DNA of 64,000 nt from Andalucia godoyi And28 (GCA_009859145.1 VRVR01000038.1:215222-279221); one strand, 5' to 3'; shown: positions 13,739 to 64,000, numbered from the stretch's first letter. Notes: generated from the letters alone by a model not told the origin. Made by a program: numbers and translations.

Positions 13739-14054
13739 ATTGCTTGCGATCTCACGCGCCACTGCACACCCCACGCAAAAACGCACGCACACAAACACAC
13801 GCGAACGAGTCAAAAGAGAGAAAAAGAGGGTGAAAGAAAGGGAGAGAATGGGGGAAAAGGCTTGAAAAAGAATGGGAAAACTTGAGGATTGAGAGACTCG
13901 AGTTTTCACTACAGCCGCTGAAGAGTGGGCAGCGGGGGAAGACGCCTTTGATTCCGCGCACTCTCGTTTACGCACTGAGCAACGGTGTGTGGGGTCACTG
14001 TTTACATGCTGAATTACTGTACTGTGCTTTGCTGTGCTGCGGAGGGGCTCGCTG

Positions 14055-15776: not shown

Positions 15777-16264
15777 ATCCTCCCACCTCTTCTCCTCCTC
15801 CAGGTCACACAACAGCAAATGCAAACCAAAACACAACAACAACAACAAAACTCACAGAACAAATCAGAAAAAAACCCCAAAACAATCAAGCAAAACACGA
15901 AAATCACTTTCGAAAAGAAAAAAGGAAATAATCTGAGCCGTGTGTCGTGTCGTACTGTAGTCAGCAGTCCGAACCACCCTTTGGTGAAGGCCAGCCACCC
16001 GTCGTAGCAAGCTGCTCTTCCTAAAGTCTTTTAATCCCGGTTTTCATCTTCTTTTCCTTTTTTCCTTTTTCTCTCACTTTCTTTTATACCTTTTTTTTTT
16101 TTTTGAAGTTTAGTTTTCCTGAAGAACAGCTAAGCGCAATTGTCGTATCCGGGTTGAGAGAGAGAGAGAGAGAGGGAAAGGCTAGAAACACATACAAGGA
16201 AATAACAGTGACCATTGCTGTACGACGACTGCTTTAAGTACTCATCAATTATTGTTTATTTATT

Positions 16265-18922: not shown

Positions 18923-19218
18923 ATGACACGAATGTTGCTGCTACGATCCAAAAAAGTTGCTGCCACTAATTGCGATATGATGAAACAATCTAAAGCGCAC
19001 GTATACAAACGCAAAAACGAGCCCGCGACGAGAGCAGCGAAAGTGAAGACGTACCCGTCGACGAGCCAGAGATCAGCTGTGCGAAGGTGGCTCGGCACAG
19101 CGCGCTGGATCTACAACGCAGGCCTCGTGGCCGTCCGCGAAAGAAACGCGTCTCGCTCAACATCAAGGCGCTGCCCGCACTGCTTCTCAACAGTGCTTCT
19201 GAGACTGTGCAGCAACAT
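18923..19218 (+). pseudogene. Fanzor2/TnpB N-terminal relic (copy A): HTH_OrfB_IS605-like domain, frameshifted and truncated
   Basis: KVKTYPSTSQRSAVRRWLGTARWIYNAGL fits the TnpB/Fanzor N-terminal pattern K.R.YPT.EQ...L..W.G.AR..YN. It continues in the -1 frame as LNIKALPALLLNSASETVQQH. 19068-19218 is identical to 55083-55233. Confidence 0.75.
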
Positions 19219-19276
19219 TGATTATGGGTGATCAGCGATGATTATCCGTGGTTAGTGTGCAGTGTAGGTGCACTGC
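19219..19276 (+). ncRNA. Candidate structured element end shared by Fanzor relics A and B
   Basis: GGGTGATCA-GCGA-TGATTATCC (19226-19247) is a 9-bp stem with 2 G-U pairs and a GNRA loop, identical at 55305-55326; a second stem GCAGTG/CACTGC lies at 19259-19276. Confidence 0.3.
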
Positions 19277-22358: not shown

Positions 22359-22655
22359 GAAAGCAACAGCAACAACGACAACAACAATAATGAATAATGA
22401 ACAATGAACAATGAACAATGAACAATGAATAATGATAATCTAATTCCTTCTACTCGCTGCCGCACACACTCTCTACACTGTCTTTTTTAAATTAATAGGA
22501 ATAATAATAAAATAAAGTAAAAGAAAAAATCGAAAAACGAAGAAAAAGCAATGCTGAATGGGGAAAACAGACGCCGAATAAACGCGAATATCTATTGTGC
22601 TTGCATGGGATGTTAGCCAATCTGGAGTGGCGATCGGGGGATTTTTTCGAGATTG

Positions 22656-36620: not shown

Positions 36621-37192
36621 TCTTTGTCGAACTGAAACAAGGCGTCTGACAAACTCGTTCGTCCAAAAAAAAAAAAGAAGAATAATAATAATAATAAAAT
36701 CAGTGAAACCCCAAACAAACGATAAGAACGATACGTCCCTTGCTCTGAGCGTTTGCGGGTGATTTTCCCCGTCAACAAAAAACCCAGCAAAACCAAGAAC
36801 GAGTGTTGCGACTCATCTCGATGCTTTAAAACTCGTGTGGAGCGAGAATGGACCTCAAGTCACTTGCCTTCTGGTTTTTCACCGACATCAAATCCGCACA
36901 GTCCAACTTTTAACAGTTTATTATTATTATCGTGGTTTCCTTTTTGGCAGGCTCCAAAGACCGCATCGTCGGAAGAAGCACCAGCAGAGCGACCAGAAGC
37001 AGAAGTAGGGAACGAGTGCAGGAGTTAACATTGAGAAAAGGAGAATTTTAATTAAAAATAAATAGAAATATCCAACAGCAAAAGTTGGAGCATCTCTTAA
37101 AAACGGGATGTGGGCTGCTTATTCGCGCAGGACGATAGGGTGGTGAAGGATCACTTGCATGCCAGCGGCCGGCAGATGTTTTCGTGCAGATT

Positions 37193-45166: not shown

Positions 45167-45215
45167 TCTGCCTGTGGAATTAAAACAAACAAACACACAT
45201 TCCAAAAAAACAATA

Positions 45216-45257
<42 letters not shown>
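45216..45257. repeat. (AAT)14 microsatellite between convergent genes
   Basis: Read directly. Confidence 0.9.
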
Positions 45258-45262
<5 letters not shown>

Positions 45263-45315
45263 TAACAGCAAGAGTAATAGTAATAATGATAATCGTCATT
45301 GTATCAGATTTGTTG

Positions 45316-47169: not shown

Positions 47170-47602
47170 TTCATTTCACTGTTTTGCTTATTCGACATCC
47201 CAACAGGCATCGCGTCCAGGAAGCAAAGCACAAAACAACAACAGCAGCAACAACAACAACAACAACAACAACAAAACAACCTCCCAACGAAACACCCTGC
47301 TTTCCCCATACTTTCTTTGTGCCCCAGTCTTTTCTTGGCTGTTCTGTTTCCCTCTGTAGACAAATGTAGACGCTCCTGTTTGGTCTTGCTGGAGTTGTTG
47401 TTTTTTTGGAACGGACATCTTTATGAACGGGCCCCACTCTCCAGTTCCCGGATTCTGGGTGCTTCAGACGCTTTAGTGCTGGGAAGTGGGAAAACACAAT
47501 CAGAGAGTGGAAAAGGGGGAGGAGGAAAAATAAATACATAAATAAATAAATAAAGGAAGGAGAGTGCGCACACAGAAAAAGGGAATCAATGTTGGATCGA
47601 CA

Positions 47603-50365
47603 ATGTTCCGTCTAGAAGTCACCCGTATCGAATGTTTTGATACATCGAAAGGTGCACCGGGGTTTGGCGACATGGATTCTTTGGAGCGCAATCAGGACAC
47701 ATCACCTTCTATGCCATCGGCTTCTTTTGAAGTGTTCTTGGACATGTCTTGCGAAGGAGAGATTCCCCAAAAATTCTTCGTTGGTCTCCTTTCCCCCAAC
47801 TCTTCTGTGGCGCTTCAGAGCTGTACGTTGGAATATTTTGCGTTCCGTCCGGTCACGTTCACGCTGTTCCGCGGAGCATACACGCGCGTATCATCACACA
47901 CGATCTCCGACTTTCTCCTTGGGTATGACATCGGGGAGTTCAGAAAAGAAATTGTTTTTTCGTCTCGAAGGTACTCAAACCTGATCTTTAAGTTGTTTGT
48001 TCGAATCATGCCGGCCGTCACCGAATGGTCCATGTCTGTCGTCCAGGTTTCTCGAACGCGCGGAACCGGATTAGAAGCGTTCGGGCTCCAGTACTTCAGA
48101 GGCTCTCCGTCCACAGATCCATTGAAGACTTCTGTGGCGAAAACTGGCAGAATTGCCACCAGATCGGATTGCGATGTTGCATTCGGTTCCTACACATCCT
48201 CGGATGTTTCGTCGCAGCACGTGTCCCACCACGGTTCTGTAATGGGCATGGGAGCCTGCACGCTGGTATGGACAGCCCAGCGATCATGGGGTCGTCAGCG
48301 CATTGTCGGCATCTCGAAGTTTCGGCTCGAGTATGAAGATGGGCGTTTGTTTTTTCTTTTTGATTCGGAAGAAGGTGTGCAGGTCTCTGTTCCGGGAGAA
48401 TGGTCCACCAGTGTTAGAATCGGAGAATATATTGTAGAGCTGCGCGTAGAGTTTCTGCGACCAAAGGTGCAGAACATGCCGCTGCTTTCGGCCGAGGGCG
48501 GATGGCAAGGGGTCAGCACCATTCCATCACGCGAGACGTCAATCAAGGTTCTCATCGATGGCTTGCAAACATTCCGCGCATATTATTCCGCATTGCGCAG
48601 GGCGACACGGTCCATCGATATTACTGCGTGGGAGATGAGTTTGTCTTTTGGTTTAGTACGGAGGAAGCCGCATAACTATGTTGGATTTCACACGACGCCG
48701 TTGTGGATTACAGTTTCGGACGTGTTGCTGGATCGTGCTTTGCATGGAGTAGATGTCCGTGTTATTGTGTGGCGACACAACATGGTGTCGTGGCTGTCGC
48801 GATGGCTGTACTTGGGGGAGGTCACGATTGAGAGAGAGTGCTCCAAGCTCCAAGACCGGGCAACGGCTCTTGGGATCCACTGCCGAATTTTCAATTCGAT
48901 TAATGATGAAGTCCCCGAGTCTGCTCTTCACTGCGCCACTGCACGTTCTGTGGGCAGCATTTCGATAATGATTGATGGCAATCCCCACGGCGTGGTTTCC
49001 TGTCACCACGAAAAGCTCGTGTTGATCGATGCAGACGTGGAAGGCAGTGAAACCAGCACGGCCTTCATGGGAGGATTCGACATGACAAAAGGTCGCTTCG
49101 ACCAGCCAGCCCACCAGTTGCCCGTTTCTTACTTTGCAACGCATGTCATTGGAGCCGGTGAGCCGCAGCGAAAACGATATGGCGACGCCGCCGTGCAGCC
49201 CATCTTCAAACATATTCGAATGCTATGGCATGATGTGCAAATACAGCTTCGCGGAGCCGGTGCGGTTGCGTTTCTGAGGCTGCATTTCGAGCAAAGATGG
49301 TATTTTTCGTGTGCCAGGGATGTGTACAAGACACGCCACTTCCACTTGGCAAGAAAAGACCTGGTCGAGAAGGCGGCGACATTGGCTGCAGTGCCGTCCC
49401 CAAACCCACTGATTCAGGAGCGTCCTCCGGAAATCGTTCCGGAATGTGAAATTGAAGACATTGAGGATCCCGCCGAGGACCCTGCTTCTCTTCCATGGTT
49501 TCGACCGACGTCCGTAGAGATCTCCCGAGGATGGCCACCCGTTATCGACTCGCGATCATTAGTAGACGCGTTCTCTAGAATCATTGGGTCTGCAAAGAAG
49601 TCCCTGTATGTTGAGCATCAATATCCGTTTCACAACGAGGCATTGACACACCAGCTGTGCTCGCAGCTGGCGATGAATCCAGATCTGCATGTTACGGTGG
49701 TGATGCCGGTAGTGTCGGATTTACCGACTGGGCTTCTGGGATCGTGGATCGACATGTCACAAGATGACGTGCACTCAAACCTTCGACTGGTTCATGCAGC
49801 AGCACCGGATCGCGTGGGCGTGTTCGGAATAGTCAGCTCCGCTTTTGAGCAAATGATGCATCTTACGGACCCAACATACCGCATGAAGCCTATCTATGTC
49901 CACTCCAAAGTCGTGATTGCAGATGACGATGCTGTTTTGATAGGGTCTGCGAACATGGACAATATGTCGCTGTTTCGAGCATCGGAATTGGCCGTGATGC
50001 TGGTGGATCGCGAGTTTGCGCATCATATTCGGATGCGTCTGTGGAGAGAACACTTGTCACCGCTGTCCGTTCCGGAGGAGCTGGACTCTGGTCTGCGATT
50101 GTTTCGTCAGATGGCAGAGGAAAACTTGCACCGACTGCATGTATTGCACGGCCGCATGGCACGGCCGCAGGATATTCCTCTGTATGGCAGGGTGGTTCCA
50201 TTGGTGCCAGCGGACACGTTTCGGATTGTCAGAAACCTTGTGAGTCCCAGATCTTCGCGTCTCTGGATTTCAGGGCTTCTCCCACCGTCCCCTGCCATCA
50301 CGGCAACCATCAGCCGCAGCGCTACCACTTCGGAGTCGGGGTTTTTCCTCCAAAGCATGCTGTGA
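47603..50365 (+). CDS. Phospholipase D with two HKD motifs
   Basis: CHHEKLVLID and YVHSKVVIADD...IGSANMD; AFMGGFD, WHDV, LYVEHQY. Confidence 0.88.
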   Translation: MFRLEVTRIECFDTSKGAPGFGDMDSLERNQDTSPSMPSASFEVFLDMSCEGEIPQKFFVGLLSPNSSVALQSCTLEYFAFRPVTFTLFRGAYTRVSSHTISDFLLGYDIGEFRKEIVFSSRRYSNLIFKLFVRIMPAVTEWSMSVVQVSRTRGTGLEAFGLQYFRGSPSTDPLKTSVAKTGRIATRSDCDVAFGSYTSSDVSSQHVSHHGSVMGMGACTLVWTAQRSWGRQRIVGISKFRLEYEDGRLFFLFDSEEGVQVSVPGEWSTSVRIGEYIVELRVEFLRPKVQNMPLLSAEGGWQGVSTIPSRETSIKVLIDGLQTFRAYYSALRRATRSIDITAWEMSLSFGLVRRKPHNYVGFHTTPLWITVSDVLLDRALHGVDVRVIVWRHNMVSWLSRWLYLGEVTIERECSKLQDRATALGIHCRIFNSINDEVPESALHCATARSVGSISIMIDGNPHGVVSCHHEKLVLIDADVEGSETSTAFMGGFDMTKGRFDQPAHQLPVSYFATHVIGAGEPQRKRYGDAAVQPIFKHIRMLWHDVQIQLRGAGAVAFLRLHFEQRWYFSCARDVYKTRHFHLARKDLVEKAATLAAVPSPNPLIQERPPEIVPECEIEDIEDPAEDPASLPWFRPTSVEISRGWPPVIDSRSLVDAFSRIIGSAKKSLYVEHQYPFHNEALTHQLCSQLAMNPDLHVTVVMPVVSDLPTGLLGSWIDMSQDDVHSNLRLVHAAAPDRVGVFGIVSSAFEQMMHLTDPTYRMKPIYVHSKVVIADDDAVLIGSANMDNMSLFRASELAVMLVDREFAHHIRMRLWREHLSPLSVPEELDSGLRLFRQMAEENLHRLHVLHGRMARPQDIPLYGRVVPLVPADTFRIVRNLVSPRSSRLWISGLLPPSPAITATISRSATTSESGFFLQSML

Positions 50366-50726
50366 TTCGCGAAATTGGGCGAGTTCCCCATCGACTGCGG
50401 TTATATGCCGCCTTGTCGCCGATTTCGCTGTTTGTTACATCCTACCGGAAATTATTTTTTAAGGCCGACTTATCTCCGTCTGTATATTTTTATGTTTTGG
50501 GCTTTTTTTTCCCCTTCTTTTCCCCTTCCTTTCTCTTCCGTTCTTTTCCGTTCTTTTCCTTCCTTCTCCCGTCCCCCTCCCTCTTCCTCTACTTCTATGA
50601 TCAGAACAATCAGTCAATCTTGAAATTCTGTTGTGCGTGCGATCGACACTTTACTTATTCAAAACCTTTTTTTGAAAAAAATATTTCGCTGGGCTCTTTG
50701 TTTTTGTTTTTCCACCCCTGCTCACA

Positions 50727-51800
50727 ATGTCATTGTTTCAGTCTATTAAGGTTGGCGCGCTGACGCTTCCGAACCGCATTGTAATGGCACCCATGACTCG
50801 TGGCCGTGCGAATGGTGACGGAGTTCCCCACCCACGAATGGCTGTCTACTACGCGCAGCGTGCGTCCGCTGGCCTTCTGATCACCGAAGGAGTTTTCATA
50901 TCACCACAGGCGGTCGGATGGGTCAATGCACCTGGTATCTACACGGATGCGCAAATCGAGGGATGGAAGTCTGTTACGAATGCAGTTCATGAAAAGAATG
51001 GGCGCATCTTTCTTCAGCTGTGGCACATGGGACGTGTTTCGCATCCCAATTTTCAGAATGGGTCGCTACCTGTCGGACCCTCAGCGATTGCTGCTGAAGG
51101 AGAGACATTTACTCCTGCCGGAAAGTGTGCCTATGTGACTCCCCACGAACTGACTGCTTCCGAAATTGCTCAAACGGTTGCCGATTTTGCTCAAGCCGCG
51201 AAGAATGCAATCGCTGCTGGGTTTGATGGAGTTGAGATTCATGGTGCCAATGGATACCTCGTGGACGAGTTCATTCGCGACGGCTCCAACAAGCGAACCG
51301 ACGAATTTGGAGGTTCGATTGAAAAACGCTGGAAATTCCCTCTCCAGGTTGTCCAAGCGGTGGTGAACGCGGTTGGGGCGGAAAAGACTGCAATCCGTCT
51401 GAGCCCTGTTGGTGGATACAACACCATGTCCGATTCTGATCCGCAGGCGACGTTTACCTACGGTGTTTCTCAGTTGAACAAGTTTGGTCTTGCATTTTTG
51501 CATGTTTTGGAAGCCGGTCCTGGACACATGATGTATAACGAGAATGCACCTGTGGTCCACCCTCATTTGCGAAAAGCTTTCCAAGGTCCTTTCTTGCTGA
51601 ATGGCGGACAAACAAAGGATTCTGCAGAGGCAGCGATGGCATCCGGCGCTGCAGACTTCATCTCGTTTGGTGTTCCGTTTCTGGCCAACCCAGATCTTGT
51701 AAACCGGTTGAAGAAGGGTGATGCTCTTGCAATGCCAGATTTTGCCAAATTGTATGGTGGCGATGAATCTGGATACACTGACTATCCTGCCTTGGAATGA
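50727..51800 (+). CDS. Old yellow enzyme / NADH:flavin oxidoreductase (alkene reductase, NemA-like)
   Basis: NRIVMAPMTRGRA, YYAQRASAGLLITEG, QLWHMGRVSH, GFDGVEIHGANGYLVDEF, RTDEFGGS, FLANPDLV, GYTDYP. Confidence 0.95.
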   Translation: MSLFQSIKVGALTLPNRIVMAPMTRGRANGDGVPHPRMAVYYAQRASAGLLITEGVFISPQAVGWVNAPGIYTDAQIEGWKSVTNAVHEKNGRIFLQLWHMGRVSHPNFQNGSLPVGPSAIAAEGETFTPAGKCAYVTPHELTASEIAQTVADFAQAAKNAIAAGFDGVEIHGANGYLVDEFIRDGSNKRTDEFGGSIEKRWKFPLQVVQAVVNAVGAEKTAIRLSPVGGYNTMSDSDPQATFTYGVSQLNKFGLAFLHVLEAGPGHMMYNENAPVVHPHLRKAFQGPFLLNGGQTKDSAEAAMASGAADFISFGVPFLANPDLVNRLKKGDALAMPDFAKLYGGDESGYTDYPALE

Positions 51801-51971
51801 GCTCGTGAGTACTCTTGCTCGCGGCAGCATGGGAATCACACGCTCTTAGAATGTTCCCTCCTGCCATAAAGAAGTTTTAATTCTTACTTCACATTTGCCT
51901 ATTTTTATTTTTATTTTTATTTTTATTTTTAATTTTTAAAAAGAATCTGTCGAGAAATGAAGGAACTCGCT

Positions 51972-53357
51972 TTACGCGACGGATCCATACTGGGATCGCT
52001 TGCGACGCTTCAAGAAGCAAAACACACCCACTGCGCCTAAAACGGCAACACCTCCGCACACTCCGCCGATGATGGCAGCCTTGTTCGGACTGTCATCGGA
52101 TCCTGACGACGAATCTGATCGTGGCTTGGGACGCGTGCATGGGACACTCGCATCGTCCTCGACAGGCCACGAAAATCCCGAGTCTTGCTCGGGCTGACTG
52201 AAGATGAGACTCCAGTCGCCGACTTCGGGTAAGAGAAACACGCTAGACCCATTTTCGCGCGTTCGGATCCAGAGCCGGACATTGTAGGGGTCGCTTGTGT
52301 ATCCAACCGCTCGGCCAGAAGTGGTCGGGAACGTGTACCTACCGCCGAGAGAAACCCATTTGAAGTCCGGCCAGTAGCGAACGTAGAAGCAGCTTCCGAG
52401 TGGACAGCGGCCGACAACAGTCGTCAAGGCCGCGACGCTTTCGAAAGAAGAAAACTCCCCAAACACCAAAGAACTGCTTTTCGCGGCATCCAATGTTGCA
52501 GGATCCCACACTCCCGAAGTTGCATTCAGCACTGCAAACGGAACATAAGAGGCATTGTCAAACATTTCAATCGTCACCAACACTGTGTTTTTCGGATATG
52601 GCAGCACTCGTGCGGAATTTCCGATGGCAAACTCCGCTGTTGACGCAGGCAAATTATGTATCTTCCAATCCCCTGTCACGGATTCAAGCACAGCAACAGG
52701 GGCCACTGGTGCCCAAAATCCGCAGACTGCCGCGATGTTGTGGCCAATCGAAAGTGACCGAATGACTGGCTCAGAGTCAGGGCCAATACGGGAATCTGGA
52801 GCGGGAAATGCACCTGGATATAGGCTCCACGAGGCCGCGCCATTTACCCATCGCATGAATGCATACGACGTTAAATTGCTGTTTGCAGCGATTGCAAACA
52901 ATGCGAACGGCTGATCCGGAAAATCCCGCGTCAGAAAATTCGTGTCGTTTCCTGCGATTGTGAGAGCACGTAACGAAACAAACGGTTCGGGCAGCGCCGG
53001 AACGTCAATCCACATTTGTAGGCGGAAATCAAATCCCAGCACAGACCGCTTTTCAAACAGGAGCTGATTCCCGGCGGTCAAGGAGAATCTGGAAGACAAT
53101 CCAAAGAAACGAAGTTCTGGCAAATCGTCCAATGCAGATTCTGAAGTGAATGCCAGGTCGTATTGATCCAAGGGATTTTCGAGCATCGAAATCTTCCCAA
53201 CAACTTCGGGGTCTTGGCACAGCGTTCGGAAGAGCCGAATCTGGTAGCCATCCTCCACTTTTGCAAGGCTGAGCGCCTGGAATGGATCGGATGCGCGAGC
53301 ACTCGTCAATAGGATAGAAAAGATGACGAGAAAAATCCCCAGCTCCTGCGCAGTCAT
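51972..53357 (-). CDS. Orphan type I membrane protein (signal peptide, single TM, short tail)
   Basis: MTAQELGIFLVIFSILLTSARA signal; TM AAIIGGVCGGVAVLGAVGVFCFL followed by KRRKR and YGSV. Confidence 0.7.
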   Translation of the reverse strand: MTAQELGIFLVIFSILLTSARASDPFQALSLAKVEDGYQIRLFRTLCQDPEVVGKISMLENPLDQYDLAFTSESALDDLPELRFFGLSSRFSLTAGNQLLFEKRSVLGFDFRLQMWIDVPALPEPFVSLRALTIAGNDTNFLTRDFPDQPFALFAIAANSNLTSYAFMRWVNGAASWSLYPGAFPAPDSRIGPDSEPVIRSLSIGHNIAAVCGFWAPVAPVAVLESVTGDWKIHNLPASTAEFAIGNSARVLPYPKNTVLVTIEMFDNASYVPFAVLNATSGVWDPATLDAAKSSSLVFGEFSSFESVAALTTVVGRCPLGSCFYVRYWPDFKWVSLGGRYTFPTTSGRAVGYTSDPYNVRLWIRTRENGSSVFLLPEVGDWSLIFSQPEQDSGFSWPVEDDASVPCTRPKPRSDSSSGSDDSPNKAAIIGGVCGGVAVLGAVGVFCFLKRRKRSQYGSVA

Positions 53358-53394
53358 TCTGTTGGGCTTTTGTGACAACAGCACACAAAAAAAA

Positions 53395-53430
<36 letters not shown>

Positions 53431-53959
53431 TTTAAAAAAATCAACATTAATACCTAAAAACCCCCCCCACCACGTATAAACAAAAGACACGCCAGAAAGC
53501 TATCGAGTCTTTTTTTCGGGGAAATCCGCGCGAAAAATGCGCAATTCTGCCAAAATCGTGAGGGAATTCGTAGCTCTTAACGTCGCCTCATTTTTACTTT
53601 TGAGTCGCGTACTAAGCATGGTGAATGCTGACGTTGAAATGACAAAGGATCCGTTTTCCAACTTGGCGGGAAGCTGCTTCTCAAATTCTCTTATTGGTCA
53701 GAAAGTCCTGTATCATTCCTCACATATATATTTTTAAATATCCAAGTACGCCATTACGTAAGGACGAATGTCGTGGGATCGAATCATGGTAAAGAAATAG
53801 GTTACTTGGGTCAGATCATTTGAGCTCCGCACACCTTCGGAACCGCGAATCAGAGTTGCGCAGAATGCTGAGTGTCTGAGCGCTCAGGGCAATATACATT
53901 TAATAATGATAATAATAAAAATAAAAGACATCGTATGGCTGGAAAATACGGAAAACTCG

Positions 53960-54020
53960 CTAGTGAGAGAGTCCCAGTGTCGATCGTCGATCATTAGCCT
54001 GCTAGACGACGGTCGATTGA
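53960..54020. repeat. Structured dispersed repeat, copy 1 (47-nt core 53974-54020)
   Basis: 40/47 identical, ungapped, to 63275-63321; 10-bp stem TCGATCGTCG/CGACGGTCGA with apical TTAG-CCTG-CTAG. Confidence 0.8.
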
Positions 54021-55075
54021 ATGTGTGAACAGTCCTTCCGATACATTCTTCATCATTTATTGCGTGTGGCTTAGTTTTTATTTCATCGCAGCGCTGCTTT
54101 CCACTCCAGATCATGCGGGATCCTACTCTATCTGCTGATCATGGCAAATAAAACACTCTGATAACCAATTTCGGTTTGTTAATAGTTCCAGAAAAGATCG
54201 CTTGGTTGTTTGTTTGCGCAGAAGGCAAGGGGGAGTACGGTTTCATCGCAATTCATGAAAGAACACAGAATCAATATTGTGTCCAAGAAAACCGTTGCGG
54301 ATAGAAGGGCGATACCGAAAGCGTGGCTTGCAGAGGTGGCACACGATGATGCCGAATTAGCAGACGGCAACAATGGTGGGATGAGACGAATCGCTGATTT
54401 TAAGCCTCCACTCAGATACGGATACGCAGCAGTGGTGCTTAACCCAAATTCTGCGAATAGTCAAGACACATTTTATCCGTCGATTGTGCCAAAAGAAATA
54501 GTGGACAGCATTTTCCTTCGCATCCGCAAGTAGACATGAGTTCTCACTGCCGTCTTGCTTCAGCATGCATGTTTGTTGATGTTCCGTCGTCAAATGTTTT
54601 CGCTTCCTTGTGTTCATCAGATGCGTCGCGTAGTTCTTCCATCAGTAATTCAGTACAAAGGCCAGGGATTTTGGGATTTTCCCGTTTCTGCATTTGTCAT
54701 CTATGGCCGATTCGATCTGGCAGCGACGCCAACCAGAGAGTGATTATCTGCCAACTGCTTTAGTCCACGATCAGTTCGCAGACGCTGCAACCACGGAGCG
54801 ACTCTTCCTTGAAAAGGCGATGTTGTCAACTCTGCTCTGCGGGAAAGGTGTCTGATGTGCAACCAAGACGGAAGGATTGGCATCCACTTCAAAAACTGAC
54901 ATTCTGTTCGGACAAGGCCGCCTTGGACACTATGCATCAGCGAGGCAAACCATTCGTTTGGACACAGATTTAAGTTTCAAAACCAGACACAGCACACGTA
55001 ACACAGAGTCGCAATTGTCAGATATATGCGAACCCAGAAAGTGATCAAATGAAATCCAGCGGTCCTCGAAGTGCA

Positions 55076-55349
55076 CGCGACGAGAGATCAGCTGTGCGAA
55101 GGTGGCTCGGCACAGCGCGCTGGATCTACAACGCAGGCCTCGTGGCCGTCCGCGAAAGAAACGCGTCTCGCTCAACATCAAGGCGCTGCCCGCACTGCTT
55201 CTCAACAGTGCTTCTGAGACTGTGCAGCAACATCCATGGCTAGCAGAGGTGCCGCCATACGACATGCGTGATATGCATGTTGCTGGGTTGCAACATTGAT
55301 TATTGGGTGATCAGCGATGATTATCCGTGGTTAGTGTACAATGTGGGCG
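55076..55349 (+). pseudogene. Fanzor2/TnpB N-terminal relic (copy B) plus shared downstream hairpin segment
   Basis: RSAVRRWLGTARWIYNAGL, then in the -1 frame NSASETVQQHPWLAEVPPYDMRD (Fanzor2-like WL.EVP.D.R); 151 nt identical to copy A; downstream homology to about 55349/19270. Confidence 0.75.
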
Positions 55350-55677
55350 TTGAGGATGAAGACATACCATGGATCCATGCAGCAGCATTCAGCATTGGGT
55401 GGAAGTTTTGGATTGCGGAAGTGATGTGCCCGATGCTCCGGTGTGGGCAGGCTGAGATTCATGTTCATCTGCTAGGACGTGTCCTTTTCGCAGGCGCTCA
55501 CATCAAAGAATTCAGGATCTTACCATGTTTCGGTGACCGACGTCGGGAAGTCCAACATTGTGTTCAAACTTCGCTCCATGAAGAAACTTAAACGGAGCCT
55601 TCGTTCCACGGAACATTTTCTGGTTTCTTCTTCTTGTGTATTACAATTTGTGATGCATCTGACTGGCCTAATACGCA

Positions 55678-57846
55678 ATGAGGTTTGCCAAGTATCTTGC
55701 GGATCATTTTGTTCCGGAATGGAAGAGCCAGTACGTGGACTACAAAGCGTTGAAGAAACTCATCTCTAGACTCTTTGCGGAAACGTCTGGAAATGCGCCG
55801 TGGGAGTTTTCACCATCCACAGCATTCACGGACCTTCTTGACAATGACGGAGTTGAAATTCTGGATGCCACTTTCAAAGTAATTAACAGTCGAAGAAGAA
55901 ACGACGTCGCTCCGGATGTCTGCGCTGCGTCTGCAATTCATCATTCCGAGTCCCGGGGGGACTTGGCACATAATTATCAAGAAAGAGTCTTTTTGGCTAG
56001 CATTTCAAAAGAGATTCAAAAGGTCTCTGCTTTCTATGAGCAACAACTTGTCACCTTGCATTCGAATATTACTGCAATGGAGGATATGTTGCTGAAGTGG
56101 CCCGGTGGAAAGCAGCGACCCAGAGAACTGGAGATGAACCTGAGGCTGGCTTGTTTGGAGTTTTATCGTAACCTAGGACTCATACGGAATTTTGCAGTGA
56201 TGAATGCCACTGGATTTTTGAAAATTTCCAAGAAATATGATAAGGTGTTATGCTCGACGATCTGGCCCACCGTCAAGTCCATGCTGCGGAATACACCGTT
56301 TTTCGATCTGCAAGCGATAGATATGATATTGGATGAATTGAAGGAGTTGTACGCTGTCAATTTTGTGGGAGGAGATCTCAAAGCTGCGTCGAGGTTACTG
56401 CGGGTCTCGCCGTCATCACAAGAATCGTCCTTCCCGTCTGTCAAGGACCGTTATGCGTTGTTTCTTTCGGGTTTGTTGCTTGGTGGTATAGGCGTTCTTG
56501 TACTGGATATCATTTATGACGTCAATGCTACTTTTAATCAAGGCCTAGACTGGAAGTACAATTTTGTCTGGTTCAATGTTTACCGAGCCGTGGCATTTGT
56601 GTTCGCACAGGCAGCATCATTGGCAGTTGCATTCTATTTCTTTACTGAATTTCAGATCAATTACGTCTTTATTTTTGATTTGAATCCCCGTGATCACTTG
56701 TCCCCTTCTCGCTATTTGTACTTGTGCCTTTGTTTCGGTGCAGTGATATTCAGTTCTATGTTTGCGTACGTCAAATCTGTCTCGCATGAACAGCACGGAT
56801 CCCATCTCCTTTTACCATCCTCGTATCAGCCTTTGGTTGCATGTGCTGTTTTGTTGTTCTGTTTGCTGTCTCCTTGGCCACGGTTCTTCTGGACGTCGCG
56901 CAGATGGCTTCTCTCCGCTGTTCTCCGGCTGTTGTGTTCTCCGTTTCTGACTGTTCATTTTCCTGAATTTTTCATCGCTGACCAGTTATCTTCCTTGTCA
57001 TATTTTCTTGGGGATTTGCAGTACGCATTTTGCATTCGCGCTGCTGCTTCTGGATTGACTGACTCTTTGCTTGTATGCGATGGGTTGTCTGTCAGCCTAA
57101 CATATCTTCTTTCTATGATTCCATCATATGTTCGGTTGATGCAGTGTTTTCGGAGATCATATGACAAGAAGAAAATCCATCCATATTTGTCCAACTCCGT
57201 GAAGTTTGTGCTGTCTTTAGCCATGCTTTCCATCGCGTTTGCGGAATCTTTTTCTTGGGGAACATCGTGGAATGCGTGGAGAACCGTCTGGATCCTGTTG
57301 AATGTATTGTCGACAGTTGTTCGTTTGTACTGGGATTTTGTTGAGGATTGGAGAATACTTCCATGGGCCGCCGTGCGTGAAAGGAATTGTTTCCGTTCGC
57401 GTTTGTTTCATCCGTCCGCTGTTCTCGTCAACATCGTTTGTCGAGTTTCTTGGGCTTTGGTGTTTTTGGTTGACTTGCGAACATTTGGGGTGTGGACGAT
57501 GTTTTTGATTCTTGGTGGTTTTGAAGTGTTCAGAAAGGCAGTGTGGAACCTGGTTCGGGTAGAAAATGAGCACGTGAACAACGTTGGAAAATTTCGCGCA
57601 TTCAAGGAAGTTCCGTTGCTCAGCTACACTGGAGATTCTAGCGCTCGTGATTTGTCTAATTTTGCACCCGATGCAAATACTGCGATCTGTGCCACCAATG
57701 CACACCATCAACCTCTGATCAACACGTCGTTGGATGATGTGACTGATGATTCTCCCTATCCACCACGTGAATCCTCGGACCATGCTCCATCGACGCTGAT
57801 GTTTTCAAGCCTCCGAGCAATCGAAAACGAGGATAATGATGATTAG
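55678..57846 (+). CDS. XPR1: SPX-EXS phosphate exporter (XPR1/SYG1/PHO1 family)
   Basis: MRFAKYL...YVDYKALKK, NATGFLKISKKYDK (SPX); INYVFIFDL, FFIADQLSSL, RLMQCFRR, YWDFVEDW, EVFRKAVWNLVRVENEHVNNVGKFRA (EXS). Confidence 0.93.
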   Translation: MRFAKYLADHFVPEWKSQYVDYKALKKLISRLFAETSGNAPWEFSPSTAFTDLLDNDGVEILDATFKVINSRRRNDVAPDVCAASAIHHSESRGDLAHNYQERVFLASISKEIQKVSAFYEQQLVTLHSNITAMEDMLLKWPGGKQRPRELEMNLRLACLEFYRNLGLIRNFAVMNATGFLKISKKYDKVLCSTIWPTVKSMLRNTPFFDLQAIDMILDELKELYAVNFVGGDLKAASRLLRVSPSSQESSFPSVKDRYALFLSGLLLGGIGVLVLDIIYDVNATFNQGLDWKYNFVWFNVYRAVAFVFAQAASLAVAFYFFTEFQINYVFIFDLNPRDHLSPSRYLYLCLCFGAVIFSSMFAYVKSVSHEQHGSHLLLPSSYQPLVACAVLLFCLLSPWPRFFWTSRRWLLSAVLRLLCSPFLTVHFPEFFIADQLSSLSYFLGDLQYAFCIRAAASGLTDSLLVCDGLSVSLTYLLSMIPSYVRLMQCFRRSYDKKKIHPYLSNSVKFVLSLAMLSIAFAESFSWGTSWNAWRTVWILLNVLSTVVRLYWDFVEDWRILPWAAVRERNCFRSRLFHPSAVLVNIVCRVSWALVFLVDLRTFGVWTMFLILGGFEVFRKAVWNLVRVENEHVNNVGKFRAFKEVPLLSYTGDSSARDLSNFAPDANTAICATNAHHQPLINTSLDDVTDDSPYPPRESSDHAPSTLMFSSLRAIENEDNDD

Positions 57847-58263
57847 ATATTAGACCAAATCTGCTTGGTGGAGTCAATTCTGAGACGTGTATTGTCTGAC
57901 ACCAAATTGCAGTTTAAATCCTGATCACAAATGTTCATCATCAGTTTTTTTTTTTTTGTTGTCTGGACACCAACAGTCTCACCATATCATATCGTTTTAA
58001 TTCTCTCAGACTATCTGGTCTGGCATGCGCGAGTTTCCCAGTAAATGATTGCAAAAGAGACAAATCTCCAACTATCAACAGACGCTTGGGGAGCGGAGAA
58101 GATATCCGAAGATTTGATCTGGATTGTCCGATTTTCAGAACAATGATTGCAAATTTGAAATGAACTTCTTACTGTTTATGAGTCACTTCTTCTTTTCACG
58201 TTTCGTTGCTGTCCTTACCTATTTCTCCCTTCCCCAAAGAAAGAAAGAAAAAAGTGTCACCAC

Positions 58264-60558
58264 ATGGTAAAATTCGGAAAATACCTTCGCGAGGCGATAC
58301 TGCAGAATGGTGAACCCTCCTGGGATCCGCAGTATGCAGATTTCAAGTACTTGAAAAAGCTCGTTAAGCGGGTGAGCAAGAAGCATCTTGGTTCCGAGGA
58401 GATGTTTGCCGATGCCGTTGATCGAGAATATCGCAAAACGAATGATCATTTCTCCCGAACCGTGAAGTCGCTGCAAATTGAGCTGGCGGCTCTGGAAAAG
58501 GAACATTCGGAAATCATCACAGCTTCGCACTCGGATTATGTGCAGTCCGAAGACGGCGTGTACAACGCTGACAAGTCAGAGAAAATTCGTGCCAAACTGC
58601 GACAAGCTGTGATGACTGCAGTTCGCATCTCCGCTTTTGGGTATATCAATCAAACTGCTCTACGAAAAGCCCTGAAGAAGCATGATAAGCAGGAAAACGC
58701 ACGTTCGCTGTCTCCTTTTTGGGATCTGCAGCTCCGCAGAACAAAACTGTGTCCTCTCATTTCTCTTGAGGCCGTTTTCTGGAGAATCTCGCAGCTGTTT
58801 CAAGCCCTGAAGCGCCGATCCGTGGCGATGGAAGCCTTGCTTAAGGACCCGAGCACATCAGAAACTGGCAAGAGCAAGGCTACGGAAACAGACTTTTCCT
58901 CGTTTGAGCGCAAGAGCTTTAAGTTTTGGGTAAACCCCACGGACGTTCCAAAGCTCATTTGCAGAATAGTCGAGAATCTGCCGATATACTGTTACACGGG
59001 GTTCGATGAAACCCGAGGAACTGTTTCGCAGGAAGTCCACTCTGTGTACTTTGACAACGACCAGTTTGATTTGTACCGAACTCGAATGGCAAGAGAAGAA
59101 GGCGCGTCGTTGATTCGTATTCGCTGGTATGGCGGATCAACGCCGGCTGATCAGTGCAATACCACCTCTGCAGCAGAAATAGAAGATCTGCCGGGGAAAC
59201 AAGGACAGAAACCGAGATCAAGAAAAGCCGAAAGCACTAAAGCAGGATGTCTCAAGGCCGGAAACGTAGTGTACGTCGAAGAGAAGGTGCATCACGAATC
59301 GGACATCTCGGGTCTTGAGTCTGCCAAAGAACGATTCAAATGGTCTGACACCTTGGTCGTTCCATATTTGTTGGGAGAGTCTTTAGGAGCCGAGGAGCCA
59401 TCAGAAGTTTGGCGAGCGAAGAATCCAGTGTATGCGGACGTTCTCCAGAAAGCCTTGGCATTGAAAATCAAGCCAATGGTTCGAACGACGTATCTCCGCA
59501 CTGCATTTCAGATACCAGGAGACAACTCTGTCCGCATCTCTCTGGATACGGGAATGAACCTGATTCGAGAGTCATGCGACATGTACGGCAATCGTGAATG
59601 GTACACCGACCCGGACTCCATTCGCGAGTCAGAAGTGTATCGGTTCCCGTACGCTATTCTCGAGGTGAAACTGGAAAAGGACTATGTCAAGAATCCTCCG
59701 GTGTGGATTGCAGAACTGATGGACGATGGCGACGTTCTGATGTCTGCCAAAGAGTCGGGCAAATTTTCAAAATACATTCACGGTGCTGCAGTTCTGTTTC
59801 CCGAGCTCGTTCCAGGATTTCCGCGATGGATTATGGAACATCCGGATATTTTCCAGATTGTCACCAGTCCGACGACGCCAAGAGCCAAGCATCGTTCGGC
59901 AACAGATGGCGAAAATGCAAATATGGACAGCATCCCTGGGTCTCCTGCTGACCACGTTTCGTTGTGGATGTCTTCGGATCCTTGTCAGGTCGTCGCAGGA
60001 CAACTCGGACAGGGAGAAGAAGAAGAAATTGTTGCCCACTTGCTGCCGGGAGCTGAAAAGAAACCACCGAAGCCAGTGTCTTCCTGGAAGACTTGGTTTG
60101 CATCTGGACAGTCTGGACCTTCGACAGTCCTCACAACGGCGACCAACCCGCTGGCGTCGCAGAGCACAGAGCAACGAATGCGGTCGTTTGCGACTGTGCC
60201 GAACGTTCCTCCCAAAGGAAGGAAAGCGAAGGGTGCCGAGCCAAAGACATACTTCGCCAACGAGCGGACGTTCTTGTCCTGGATGAATGCTGCGGTTCTA
60301 CTTTCCACGGTTGGTGTCGCGTTGTTCAACATGGACTCCAGTGCTGCGATCGGCGGATTTTGTTTTCTTCTCGTTGCTTTTCTCGTGCTTGTCTATGCTC
60401 TTTATGTGTATTATCAGCGTGGAACGGCCATCGGTGGTATGGACGCCGGGTTTCGTTGGAACGATCGATATGGACCGGGAATTCTGGCTTCCAGTATCAT
60501 TGCCGCCATCATAGTATCCGTTGCTCTTGGGGCCTCCTCTTCTGGAATACGGAAATAG
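58264..60558 (+). CDS. VTC4: Vacuolar transporter chaperone polyphosphate polymerase (SPX-VTC-DUF202)
   Basis: SPX N-terminus; FERKSFKFWV, SVYFDN, IRIRWYG, RTAFQIPGDNSVRISLDT, FPYAILEVKL, KFSKYIHG; EPKTYFANERTFLSW followed by three TMs. Confidence 0.92.
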   Translation: MVKFGKYLREAILQNGEPSWDPQYADFKYLKKLVKRVSKKHLGSEEMFADAVDREYRKTNDHFSRTVKSLQIELAALEKEHSEIITASHSDYVQSEDGVYNADKSEKIRAKLRQAVMTAVRISAFGYINQTALRKALKKHDKQENARSLSPFWDLQLRRTKLCPLISLEAVFWRISQLFQALKRRSVAMEALLKDPSTSETGKSKATETDFSSFERKSFKFWVNPTDVPKLICRIVENLPIYCYTGFDETRGTVSQEVHSVYFDNDQFDLYRTRMAREEGASLIRIRWYGGSTPADQCNTTSAAEIEDLPGKQGQKPRSRKAESTKAGCLKAGNVVYVEEKVHHESDISGLESAKERFKWSDTLVVPYLLGESLGAEEPSEVWRAKNPVYADVLQKALALKIKPMVRTTYLRTAFQIPGDNSVRISLDTGMNLIRESCDMYGNREWYTDPDSIRESEVYRFPYAILEVKLEKDYVKNPPVWIAELMDDGDVLMSAKESGKFSKYIHGAAVLFPELVPGFPRWIMEHPDIFQIVTSPTTPRAKHRSATDGENANMDSIPGSPADHVSLWMSSDPCQVVAGQLGQGEEEEIVAHLLPGAEKKPPKPVSSWKTWFASGQSGPSTVLTTATNPLASQSTEQRMRSFATVPNVPPKGRKAKGAEPKTYFANERTFLSWMNAAVLLSTVGVALFNMDSSAAIGGFCFLLVAFLVLVYALYVYYQRGTAIGGMDAGFRWNDRYGPGILASSIIAAIIVSVALGASSSGIRK

Positions 60559-61486
60559 CCAGTTTGATTTTCCTCATCCAAAGATCTACTATCTTGTCGA
60601 ATGCCATTCCATGACTTTGGTGTCCTGAAATGATCTTCATTTAGAATTAAAAAATGGACGACCATTCTCGAGATTGCTCCTATCCTGTACCGTCACTGTG
60701 CAGGACACACAGACTGCGTCGGAACCCAGTTCGTGGTTGGCGAATTGGAAAAAGAACGAAAAACCAATTTTGCAGCCCATAGTACAGTGCAACAGGTCAG
60801 ATCGGTATGGACTTTACGCCTACTGCAGTACCGGAGCGAGAAAGATCACCACCTGCAGACGCAGTCGAACCTGCCAAGAAGAACCCGCCGCAGTAGTTGC
60901 CGTTCTGGTCCTCTTGTGTTCAACAACTGTCTGCCATGGGCTGGTGGCCGACTGAGATACATCCTGGTACTTCCGGTACTTCCGATCGGCTGCTCCAAAA
61001 TGCTTAGTTCTCTGCTTCTCTCCATCAGTCTGGTATCCCTCTGCAACAACGCCGCGTTGTTTTTCCATGCTCCCCTCCATGGCGCAACGCACCACTCTTC
61101 GATGGCGGATGGGTGCAGCTTGATGACCCCTTGATGCAGAGCAATCTACATTGAAGAGTTGGTGCTCGCCCCAAATTAATAAAAACAAAAACAGCATTTG
61201 GCTTGGATCTGTCTTCGGTAACAGCTTAGCCGATTCTGGTCAGTAATGATGTATGTTTTGGCGAGCGGACTTGAGCAGATGAGATCCTGCATGAAGTGGT
61301 ACCTGTTCTCGACAGTTTATGGGAACTGACGTGTGGGTCACAGCGCGGAAGTCTGGGGGCTGTTTTGGACAATGGTTTTCCGGCTGATCTGACTGCTGGG
61401 ATAGAGGCAAGTTAGGCTTGAAAACAGAAATCTCTGGGAAAAAAGGTGTTTGAGCGGAATCTTTAATCTGAACGAAAATTTGCGCA

Positions 61487-63187
61487 ATGCAACATCACCT
61501 ACATTCGATACCTCTGATCTTCATATTCGTAACGCTGTGCGTAACGTTTCTTGGGTCTTTCGTCCTTCACGTTGCCGTCGATGCGCACCGTCGCTCTGCA
61601 TTTCTACAACGCCCAAGCGATAATGCACCCACACGAACGACACCGATCGATGGCGGATCAAAGCCTGTGATTCCAGATGCTGGCGTGTCCAAGAAAAATG
61701 CGTCAGATAACTGGGATCCGTCGGTTTCGGCAAAGCGATTTGCAGACCTTATACGGCCTCTCTCGCATGAATTCGAGCTGATTCGCCATATTGTATCGAA
61801 GAATAGAGTTGGTGATCAAAGGGAAATCGTGTTTGGTGTTGTGGCCGTTGGTCGGGACATCACATTCAATTGGATAATGCAAGTTGAAAGGGCGGGTTAC
61901 AAGAACTGGTTGCTCGTCGTTCGACATCAAGCTCTATTTGAAGAAATTGAGCGTCTGTATCCCGGTCATACAATCATGGGTTTGCAGATGATGGACAAGC
62001 TTCATCTGGGGAAGTGCGGCGATGAGTATGACGACCACATTGATCTTGAACAAAACGGTGCAAACTTCAGTGGTATAATTGAAACGGTTGTCAACTACAT
62101 GCTGTTGAGATTGAACTACATTGTGATATATGCCAATGTTGACGTTGTGTTTCGAGGTTCCGTGGACCTGACTCACATCGTGAACAATACAGACATGGCC
62201 TTTTCCACTTACGATTATCCTTATTATGGACCAATGCCAAGGACTCTTGATGTGCTGCGAAAGTTGGCGTCTGGTGTTTCTGCAAACTGGGGGTTCTTTG
62301 TGTTGTTCCCCACCAAGCGCACCATAATTTACTGGAGAGAGTATGCATTGGTGCTACTCCTGCATGAGCGTGTGTGCAATGACCAACTGTACGGGATCAG
62401 TTTGTTGAATCAGCATCCAGAGTGGGTGTGTTCGTACGGATACGCAGATTCTTCAACGGATGTGATCGAGTACAGCGGAGCGAAGCTGCACCCTGATTGG
62501 TGTGTTCGGATTCGAACTCTCGACACGCTGAAATACCCGATCTATGCCGGATACGTCTCTGGATTGGCGTCTGATGCCATCGCGATTCACATGACGAACT
62601 ATTACCTCGCGCCGAAGACTCACGGCTTGCGTTCCTTGGATTTGTTCGACATTGACAAAACGAAGGAAGGCATGAAGCATTTCCAAAGACGTGTTCTAAC
62701 GTACGACTACAAATGCGGGAATAATCTCGCAGAACGATATGCTGCTGCAAAGAAGGCCACTACTTTGGCGCTCTCATTGGAGCGAGATCTGATATTGCCC
62801 ATGTTTCCCTGCAAGGAGATATCACAGCACTTTGACTTCCCACTGCTTGCGAAGTTCAATAGGACATGGTGCCCGTATGAATTATACTTGAGCCCCACAG
62901 CATTTGTACACGGTTTGTATCCTGTGGATATTCTGGAGGATAATTTCCTTCAACGAGGCGCTGCATATGAAGAGATGAAAGATGTTCACATGTTTGAGTC
63001 GCCTACTATGGACGTTGATCTTCTGAAGAAGGTGACCAATCATGTTCTCGAGCTTGGATGTCTGGTGAATGCTCAATTATCAAATGTCCCTCGATCAGTT
63101 TCCGATATCCTTTTGGACTACGATGAACAGATGAAGCGATCAGATGACTCAAGAGGCAGTATCCTGGTCCGACTGGATCCTTTCTAG
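61487..63187 (+). CDS. Type II membrane nucleotide-diphospho-sugar transferase (GT77/XEG113-like)
   Basis: N-terminal TM; NWLLV, IYANVDVVF (DxD position), ANWGFFVLFPT, NDQ, and C-terminal LALSLERDLILPMFPC. Confidence 0.7.
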   Translation: MQHHLHSIPLIFIFVTLCVTFLGSFVLHVAVDAHRRSAFLQRPSDNAPTRTTPIDGGSKPVIPDAGVSKKNASDNWDPSVSAKRFADLIRPLSHEFELIRHIVSKNRVGDQREIVFGVVAVGRDITFNWIMQVERAGYKNWLLVVRHQALFEEIERLYPGHTIMGLQMMDKLHLGKCGDEYDDHIDLEQNGANFSGIIETVVNYMLLRLNYIVIYANVDVVFRGSVDLTHIVNNTDMAFSTYDYPYYGPMPRTLDVLRKLASGVSANWGFFVLFPTKRTIIYWREYALVLLLHERVCNDQLYGISLLNQHPEWVCSYGYADSSTDVIEYSGAKLHPDWCVRIRTLDTLKYPIYAGYVSGLASDAIAIHMTNYYLAPKTHGLRSLDLFDIDKTKEGMKHFQRRVLTYDYKCGNNLAERYAAAKKATTLALSLERDLILPMFPCKEISQHFDFPLLAKFNRTWCPYELYLSPTAFVHGLYPVDILEDNFLQRGAAYEEMKDVHMFESPTMDVDLLKKVTNHVLELGCLVNAQLSNVPRSVSDILLDYDEQMKRSDDSRGSILVRLDPF

Positions 63188-63262
63188 AAGGAACTCCTTC
63201 GAGCATCAATCATGAAGCGAGGTAGCCGCTTTTCACGGCAACTCCTGGGTCGGATAACCGAA

Positions 63263-63321
63263 CCAGTGATAGTACCAGTGTCGATCGTCGACCGCTAGGT
63301 CGCTAGACTACGGTCGATTGA
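63263..63321. repeat. Structured dispersed repeat, copy 2 (47-nt core 63275-63321)
   Basis: Same orientation as copy 1; differences fall mainly in loop positions; apical CTAG-GTCG-CTAG. Confidence 0.8.
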
Positions 63322-63811
63322 CATAAAACGTTTTGTCAATCAGTTATTATACTCCACCACACTCTTTTCACTCCGTCAACACTAGATGCATTGCAGTTGC
63401 ATGGCGTGCAGCGTCTTTCCATCCCACTGCATCAGTAAGCAATAAACACACACGTTTCATTCATGCTGAATTGATTCATTCACGTACTGCAGCCCATCCA
63501 ACCACTGTAGTGGACACCCGACGCAGACACACCGACTCCGTGCCGATCGGCACGCAGAAATCGACCGACTGCTTGGCAGACTGCCATGGACCAGGGGGGC
63601 CGGTCGGCACATTCATTTTTCTGGCCCTCCTTCTCCTCTCGCATCTCACTCTCTCCCAACGACCATGAAAACCCGCGTCATGCGCTTGTCTTCTTCCACG
63701 TCTGCTGGCTTAGCATAAAATCACTTTATTCGCATCTCATTCTCCCTTCCTCTTTCTTATTCCCAGAAACCATTAACTCCCATACATTCCAGCCACCCAG
63801 TGCCACACACC

Positions 63812-64000
63812 ATGCAGGTCCCCGCATCGACCGTGTCCATCGAGGAGATCGACTTCCGCTGCGATCTCGACTACGTGGCCATCCTCTTCCGCAGCCTGGT
63901 GCACATCCGGCCCACGGCCATCACCGTCTTCTCCAACTTCACGCGCCGGGACGTCTACTGGTTTCGCAAGCGCTTCATGAAGCTGGACGGCATCTCGTTG
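63812..64000 (+). CDS. Hypothetical protein, 3'-truncated by the window edge
   Basis: ATG at 63812, open for 63 codons to the end (MQVPASTVSIEEIDFRCDLDYVAILFRSL...), with strongly GC-ending codons. Confidence 0.5.
   Translation, partial: MQVPASTVSIEEIDFRCDLDYVAILFRSLVHIRPTAITVFSNFTRRDVYWFRKRFMKLDGISL

Follow-up and report, generated by a model that had tools for sequence, protein, structure and literature searches.

A two-copy palindromic repeat in intergenic DNA of Andalucia godoyi, possibly a terminal hairpin of an old mobile element

Background

What is a short hairpin-forming repeat doing at two intergenic sites, 9.3 kb apart, in a nuclear genome of ordinary cellular genes? The question arises in a 64-kb stretch of Andalucia godoyi And28 (GCA_009859145.1, VRVR01000038.1:215222-279221; 64,000 nucleotides (nt), hereafter the window). 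Jakobids such as A. godoyi branch deep within the eukaryotes and have a very compact genome, and we know of almost no repeat annotation for them. A first-pass annotation of the window took the pair for candidate HUH- or Helitron-type termini, either of two small elements or of one cargo segment, or else for an unknown non-coding RNA. Here we present the repeat as a discrete, palindromic, conserved non-coding module with two copies in the window, and weigh what it may be. [quoted passage not shown]

Two copies of a 54-nt repeat

The two copies, at 53967-54020 and 63268-63321, lie both on the + strand and 9301 nt apart, and align without gaps over 54 nt, 45 of which (83%) are identical. The pair is found by self-BLAST of the window with an E-value of 2.5e-8, and a covariance model built from it scores both copies at 82-83 bits, the next-best match in the window being at 11.6 bits. 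Shuffled windows give a chance expectation of 0.22 for the 17-nt half and of 0.03 for the 19-nt half. On the whole, the two-copy repeat is far beyond chance, and the twin 47-nt elements noticed earlier in the same orientation (53974-54020 and 63275-63321, 40 of 47 positions identical) are confirmed. Since a 54-nt match with identical blocks of 17 and 19 nt goes beyond what convergence would give, the copies have arisen by copying.

The right edge of the repeat is sharp, with no similarity past ...GATTGA. The extra similarity once proposed 70-90 nt to the right (GCAGCG..CTTTCCA) is at chance level, being equalled by 110 of 300 shuffles. The left edge is less clear-cut: a 2-nt indel gives a common CYAGTGA (the GA completing CCAGTGA in copy 2, at 63268-63269, being inside the core), and further gaps add about 11 nt of weak similarity, CGGAWAAC..CG, with p about 0.06 for the extension alone. 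Outside the repeat unit the flanks of the two copies share neither DNA nor protein similarity, and by eye neither copy has TIRs or a TSD at the unit edges. A separate observation at the right edge of copy 2 is an AT-rich near-palindrome, TTGAC-AT-AAAACGTTTT-GTCAA at 63318-63339, which overlaps the last 4 nt of this copy; copy 1 is followed by nothing comparable.

No third copy is present in the window according to half-motif searches with mismatches, sub-motif k-mers, all-against-all BLAST of the intergenic DNA and the unfiltered covariance model. The next-best match of the model, at 50610-50659 on the - strand, shares AGTGTCGATCG and GATTGAC (11.6 bits, E 0.39), and we judge it to be at chance level because about one 11-mer match is expected. 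Beyond the window, neither half of the repeat matches any viral contig, the repeat has no match in prokaryote genomes, and metagenome contigs have none to the strict pattern. A gapped pattern finds 26 metagenome matches, which have a G+C fraction of 0.60-0.75, are probably bacterial and lack the flanks and the interior of the motif, so that they are regarded as chance. The literature on A. godoyi and jakobids makes no mention of such a repeat; the A. godoyi genome paper reports transposon- or virus-like sequence in unassembled subtelomeric scaffolds.

Hairpin anatomy and substitution pattern

The unit consists of a leader GAKAGTM, the block CCAGTG, an imperfect two-tier palindrome and a terminal TTGA. 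According to RNAalifold, the palindrome has a lower stem of 10 bp, TCGATCGTCG / CGACGGTCGA, which includes G-U (or, as DNA, G-T) pairs, and above it an asymmetric internal loop, an upper stem of 4 bp (YTAG/CTAG) and a loop of 4 nt. The sequence TCGA-TCG-TCGA repeats internally, and for this reason the preferred helix register differs from one copy to the other.

The nine differences between the copies are at alignment columns 3, 7, 25, 27, 28, 32, 33, 34 and 42. Eight of them fall in unpaired columns, in agreement with the earlier remark that changes cluster in loops and include a T-G to C-G switch; this switch, U-G to C-G at column 28, is located at the foot of the upper stem. Thus 1 of 28 paired columns has changed versus 8 of 26 unpaired ones, with a Fisher p of 0.01 that is optimistic because this very pair of sequences served to infer the structure. 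Thirteen of the 14 pairs are invariant, and the remaining one is the U-G to C-G change, with zero double compensatory changes between what are two sequences only.

Two other sources of the pattern were considered and rejected. Co-adapted substitutions are not indicated, the real haplotypes ranking 43 and 46 in stability among the 128 mixtures of the seven core differences. A coding role is also rejected, as the differences lack a 3-nt periodicity and each frame contains stops; a minus-strand open reading frame (ORF) at 53884-54114 does span copy 1, and a stop at copy 2 breaks it.

A possible terminal module of a mobile element

How could one module come to stand at two unrelated sites? In the reading that we tentatively favour, some process of DNA copying would have placed a single module, about 54-60 nt long, in two intergenic settings unrelated to each other, and the module would be the end of a rolling-circle or single-strand element, Helitron-like or HUH-like, of which only about 50 nt at one end are common to otherwise unrelated elements. 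The arms would be kept since such an end must fold or be bound for recognition, while the loops drift, and the two copies would be separate relics, not the two ends of one 9.3-kb element. What we observe is the repeat with its edges, its palindromic build, the bias of its substitutions and the lack of TIRs and TSDs; mobility, the class of enzyme and the strand that matters are what we infer.

In keeping with this reading, a discrete unit is common to two otherwise unrelated contexts, its arms are conserved while its loops vary freely, and TIRs and a TSD are lacking. In addition, copy 1 is located in the longest of the 25 intergenic regions of the window (2293 nt, of 16.3 kb in total), and this region also holds a relic of a TnpB/Fanzor gene, so that it looks like a site of accumulated mobile-element debris. 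Two more low-copy dispersed intergenic repeats in the window suggest that scattered element-derived fragments are a feature of this genome. The first is the relic itself, which comprises about 60 N-terminal codons, frameshifted and degenerate. It is one copy of a repeat, with the other copy at 19068-19275 and sharp edges at both. The two copies are 100% identical over 151 nt, after which 56 nt are missing from the 19-kb copy, between direct repeats of GCAACAT, and 58 nt follow at 93%; the perfect 151-nt identity points to copying, or to gene conversion, in the very recent past. As a repeat unit the relic stands apart, with edges of its own, and its sole link to copy 1 is proximity (1.06 kb): mismatch searches and the covariance model find no hairpin module near the copy at 19068-19275. 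A six-frame Pfam scan of 53385-55700 returns the weak HTH_OrfB_IS605 match of the relic only and no other protein remnant.

The second dispersed repeat, of about 125 nt, is in inverted orientation at 6992-7129 (+) and 61146-61268 (-). Its copies are 70% identical by BLAST and 79% by MAFFT over a wider stretch, with a T-rich tract surrounded by the conserved blocks ATCGGCTWAGCKGTYACCRAAGACAGATCCAAGCC and GGGCGAGCACCAMCTCTTC, and have no Rfam match. The copy at 61146-61268 is 219 nt upstream of the ATG of a putative glycosyltransferase gene; with copy 2 of the hairpin repeat downstream of the same gene, a repeat of a different family stands on each side of the transferase.

Helitron1 ends have 5'-TC and CTRR-3' with one subterminal 3' hairpin (PMC3627910). 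After the hairpin, the minus strand reads CACTGGGACTCTCTCACTAG followed by C in copy 1 and CACTGGTACTATCACTGG followed by T in copy 2. The minus-strand CTRR motifs that the first-pass annotation pointed out, CTAG (53963-53960) and CTGG (63266-63263), are indeed present; its claim that similarity runs on to them is less secure, since aligning CTRR takes the 2-nt indel and weak similarity may continue for about 11 nt beyond, and consequently an end of the similarity at CTRR is not established. Canonical Helitrons insert between A and T without a TSD, which places a T directly 3' of CTRR; here this base is T in copy 2 but C in copy 1, and neither copy shows a duplication. As for the opposite terminus, no second block of similarity that could hold a shared 5'-TC end exists between 54021-55677 and 63322-64000 or elsewhere in the window, and the 5' end of the putative element of copy 2 may lie beyond the window. 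No RepHel, Y1 HUH or any other transposase is found among the large ORFs of the window. Nor is there a partner for an asymmetric terminal inverted repeat (ATIR) of the Helitron2 type: no intergenic reverse complement of the leader (CACTGGKACT) occurs upstream, and the nearby CACTGG sites are all in coding regions. A miniature inverted-repeat transposable element or other cut-and-paste DNA transposon is rejected too, as the outermost bases are not inverted repeats and no direct repeats flank the unit.

A number of these results weigh against a mobile-element terminus. The CTRR evidence is weak, requiring an indel, with similarity that may go on past it and a C as the flanking base at copy 1. 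The hairpin, with 14 bp in two tiers over 41 nt, is larger than usual Helitron ends, and its spacing of 18-20 nt from CTRR is above what is typical of them. The missing 5' partner and the missing transposase count on the same side, and so do the presence of two copies only within the window and the lack of any relative in the viral, metagenome and prokaryote collections. Moreover, the fold is only modestly more stable than shuffles (z from -0.75 to -2.3), with z of -0.75 and -2.3 for 66 nt as RNA and of -2.2 and -1.8 for 47 nt of the + strand as DNA. Finally, the same orientation and the 9.3-kb spacing fit a local duplication of a functional element equally well. We regard a Helitron or another HUH identity as a candidate one for the repeat.

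RNA and DNA alternatives

The functional element just mentioned could be a structured RNA of the + strand, either a protein-binding stem-loop in an untranslated region (UTR) or paralogous small non-coding RNA genes that arose by local duplication and were kept by selection on the stem. We rate this explanation second, as a somewhat unlikely one. The consensus RNA fold is better on the + than on the - strand (-12.6 vs -5.8 kcal/mol), because several of the pairs are G-U. The avoidance of paired columns by substitutions, with the lone stem change keeping its pair, would suit an RNA, and so would the local duplication suggested by orientation and spacing. Copy 2 begins 81 nt past the stop codon of the glycosyltransferase gene, whose 3' UTR would contain it, and is the most stable 50-nt fold (-22.4 kcal/mol) within 250 nt downstream of any of 24 genes. 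However, copy 1 does not follow any + strand ORF and lies in no recognizable UTR, and hairpins are not a general 3'-end feature of the window, the mean best fold being -13.6 kcal/mol downstream versus -13.4 kcal/mol upstream of genes. The covariation amounts to one half-compensatory change and no double one, and the ranks of the two haplotypes show that they are not unusually stable. By eye, there is no shared promoter-like block upstream of the copies. Rfam 15 has no match at gathering score over the window, and around both copies an E-value of up to 10 yields chance-level matches only, none of them overlapping the repeat; ARAGORN detects no tRNA gene. Inspection by eye for small nucleolar RNA (C/D and H/ACA) boxes and tRNA-like A/B boxes also found no convincing boxes or terminal stems.

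Alternatively, the repeat could act as double-stranded DNA, a regulatory, boundary or recombination site for a dimeric or multi-domain DNA-binding protein. The contacts would be the arms TCGATCGTCG / CGACGGTCGA together with the blocks CCAGTG and GCTAGAC, and the pair may bracket the neighbourhood of SPX genes, which are involved in phosphate homeostasis. What speaks for such a dyad is that the identical blocks of 17 and 19 nt include non-palindromic bases outside the stems and therefore fit sequence-specific contacts better than a pure hairpin. Similarly, the best helix register differs between the copies, so what has been preserved is not the exact pairing. The copies also flank XPR1-VTC4, a gene pair that is linked in a distant relative too. 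But a site of this kind is hard to reconcile with its rarity, as the motif and its sub-motifs occur in none of the 23 other intergenic regions (2 of 25 overall), or with inconsistent gene distances, namely 1658 and 491 nt upstream of the next + strand ATG. In any case, the shared ancestry of the 54-nt unit would still require a copying event. We therefore consider a DNA dyad unlikely, and less probable than the RNA stem-loop.

The interval between the copies

Direct hairpins in the same orientation on both sides of a segment have the end geometry of IS200/IS605, and a TnpB-like relic lies inside the segment. Could the two hairpins then be the two ends, left and right, of a single unit of 9.3 kb, IS200/IS605-like or Helitron-like, whose cargo would be the Fanzor relic, XPR1, VTC4 and the transferase? 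The transferase might seem to favour it. Two full-length homologues in A. godoyi, ANDGO_04420 and ANDGO_02217, are near-identical to each other and 76% identical to the window protein, ANDGO_04716 is a truncated one, and stretches of the window transferase are identical to these homologues. The family is dynamic and multi-copy, with gene numbers that are not neighbouring, although such numbers may not reflect gene order.

The other genes of the interval lead us to disfavour the cargo boundaries that had been proposed in the first-pass annotation. XPR1 and VTC4 are intact, conserved cellular genes, adjacent in the window (55678-60558). In a contig of a distant relative (Logan SRR15116022), whose VTC4 is 43% identical, VTC4, a phosphate-binding-protein-like gene (PBP_like_2), an MFS transporter and an SPX-EXS gene are found within 10 kb (7082-16641), with SPX-EXS and VTC4 linked within 5 kb. 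This linkage in an unrelated contig shows that the association is old and probably functional, not a transposon capture, and SPX-EXS/VTC4 with their neighbours look like a conserved eukaryotic phosphate-homeostasis gene neighbourhood. The Logan contig has no trace of the hairpin repeat. The two palindromes enclose intact cellular genes, and nothing points to a mobile unit of the IS200/IS605 type; no TnpB/Fanzor gene stands within an element beside an end, where only the relic of about 60 codons is found. Furthermore, Y1 and RepHel genes are absent from the window, and the relic belongs to a separate repeat, whose copy at 19068-19275 has no hairpin nearby. The copies also resemble each other more closely than is usual for a left and a right end, which suggests that one and the same end is present twice. 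Consequently, a single 9.3-kb cargo unit is very improbable.

In order of probability, a mobile-element module thus comes first, an RNA stem-loop second, a DNA dyad third and a 9.3-kb cargo unit far last, the remainder being left to something else. The repeat is a small, well-defined conserved non-coding element and is not remarkable in itself. If it is a transposon terminus, it would provide a handle on the mobile elements of jakobids, including the carriers of relic TnpB/Fanzor genes; if it is an RNA or DNA signal, it would be among the first cis-elements described in jakobids.

Genomic neighbourhood

The features around the two copies are collected in Table 1. The genes in the window are eukaryotic, with long intron-free ORFs, and the large ORFs all represent cellular genes of ordinary kinds, among them Myb factors, MCM, SNF2/RING helicase, AAA ATPase, kinase and MFS. 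Copy 1 lies 583 nt past 53384, the end of the minus-strand ORF at 51972-53384, and 1658 nt upstream of the XPR1 ATG. The distance from copy 2 to the next candidate ATG, at 63812, is 491 nt; in the last 190 nt of the window codon statistics do not separate + from - strand coding. The best named match of VTC4 is ANDGO_00918 of A. godoyi with 75% identity. Proteins of the window carry EukProt flags, and the A. godoyi matches to window proteins at 75-76% may be paralogues; four window proteins are absent from Table S1 of the A. godoyi genome paper.

Table 1. Coordinates of the repeat copies, their parts and neighbouring features in the window
Feature	Position	Strand	Remark
Copy 1 of 54-nt repeat	53967-54020	+	In 2.3-kb intergenic region
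Copy 2 of 54-nt repeat	63268-63321	+	Intergenic, 3' of putative glycosyltransferase
Possible degenerate left extension, copy 1 (CGGAAAACTCG-CTAGTGA)	53949-53966	+	Has minus-strand CTAG; not significant alone (p about 0.06)
Possible degenerate left extension, copy 2 (CGGATAACCGAACCAGT)	63250-63267	+	Has minus-strand CTGG
Copy 1 lower stem, 5' arm (TCGATCGTCG)	53980-53989	+	RNAalifold columns 14-23; pairs with 54010-54020
Copy 1 lower stem, 3' arm (ACGGTCGATTGA region)	54010-54020	+	RNAalifold columns 44-54
Copy 1 upper stem-loop, TTAG-CCTG-CTAG	53994-54005	+	RNAalifold; 4 bp including U-G, 4-nt loop
Copy 2 lower stem, 5' arm	63281-63290	+	RNAalifold; alternative register GTCGACCG/CGGTCGAT possible
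Copy 2 lower stem, 3' arm	63311-63321	+	RNAalifold
Copy 2 upper stem-loop, CTAG-GTCG-CTAG	63295-63306	+	RNAalifold
TnpB/Fanzor N-terminal relic	55083-55352		HTH_OrfB_IS605, E 0.0015, below Pfam's cut-off
PLD-like gene	47564-50365	+	
Old-yellow-enzyme oxidoreductase	50727-51800	+	
Membrane protein	51972-53384	-	Without Pfam domain
SPX-EXS (XPR1-like)	55678-57846	+	
VTC4	58264-60558	+	
Putative glycosyltransferase, 566 aa	61487-63187	+	Sub-threshold Nucleotid_trans match, E 0.014
Candidate ATG	63812		

Two further observations concern the neighbourhood in general. Many intergenic regions contain tracts rich in AAT or ATAATAA, commonly at points where the 3' ends of two genes meet (8167-8240, 22480-22550, 36664-36712, 45178-45292, 51900-51937 and 53891-53939), and one such tract precedes copy 1 by 28 nt; the tracts may serve as 3'-end or nucleosome-free signals. 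At the other side of the window, the ORFs at 33-1613 and 4019-6097 are neighbouring paralogous genes, with 70% DNA identity over about 600 nt (870-1460 vs 4916-5506), and by eye they look ion-channel-like with a cyclic-nucleotide-binding domain.

Comparison with known systems

Among known stem-loops of UTRs that are bound by proteins are the histone mRNA 3' stem-loop and the iron-responsive elements. Like them, the repeat is a short, conserved stem-loop in which the stems are invariant, the loop bases vary freely and the unpaired flanks are conserved, and copy 2 is located just past a stop codon; unlike them, it has no Rfam match, and copy 1 is in no recognizable UTR.

The subterminal hairpins of IS200/IS605, the PATEs and the REP elements mobilized by RAYT Y1 HUH enzymes are prokaryotic families. 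With these the repeat shares a short imperfect palindrome, conserved flanking bases, direct orientation and the lack of TIRs and TSDs, and a TnpB-family relic close to copy 1 is a further likeness to IS200/IS605. The differences are that the window is eukaryotic DNA without a Y1 HUH gene and that the relic belongs to a different repeat unit. It is conceivable, yet quite improbable, that the module is the recognition hairpin of an HUH-type single-strand mobilization in a eukaryotic nuclear genome, REP- or PATE-like and historically tied to TnpB/Fanzor; if true, this would add a first case of such a system beyond those of prokaryotes and their viruses.

Helitron2 elements (Helentrons) offer another comparison. 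On the plus strand, a conserved leader of 13-20 nt, then the hairpin and an end 4 nt later resemble the order of 3'-ATIR, hairpin and end described for them (PMC3627910). In contrast, the leader-to-end distance in the repeat is about 41-45 nt instead of 20-30 nt, and the leader has no intergenic partner upstream.

Compared with Helitron1, the repeat differs in its 41-nt two-tier hairpin 18-20 nt from CTRR, in the C flank at one copy and in the possible similarity beyond CTRR, while the window has neither a 5'-TC partner end nor a RepHel gene. On the other hand, its minus strand has a GC-containing palindrome followed by CTAG or CTGG, without TIR or TSD, as a Helitron1 3' terminus would. Non-autonomous Helitrons bearing Fanzor1 share about 50 bp of the 3' end and about 200 bp of the 5' end with verified Helitrons, and most of their copies are 5'-truncated (PMC3627910). 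The similarity between our two copies is likewise confined to about 50 nt, as it is among different non-autonomous families (PMC3627910).

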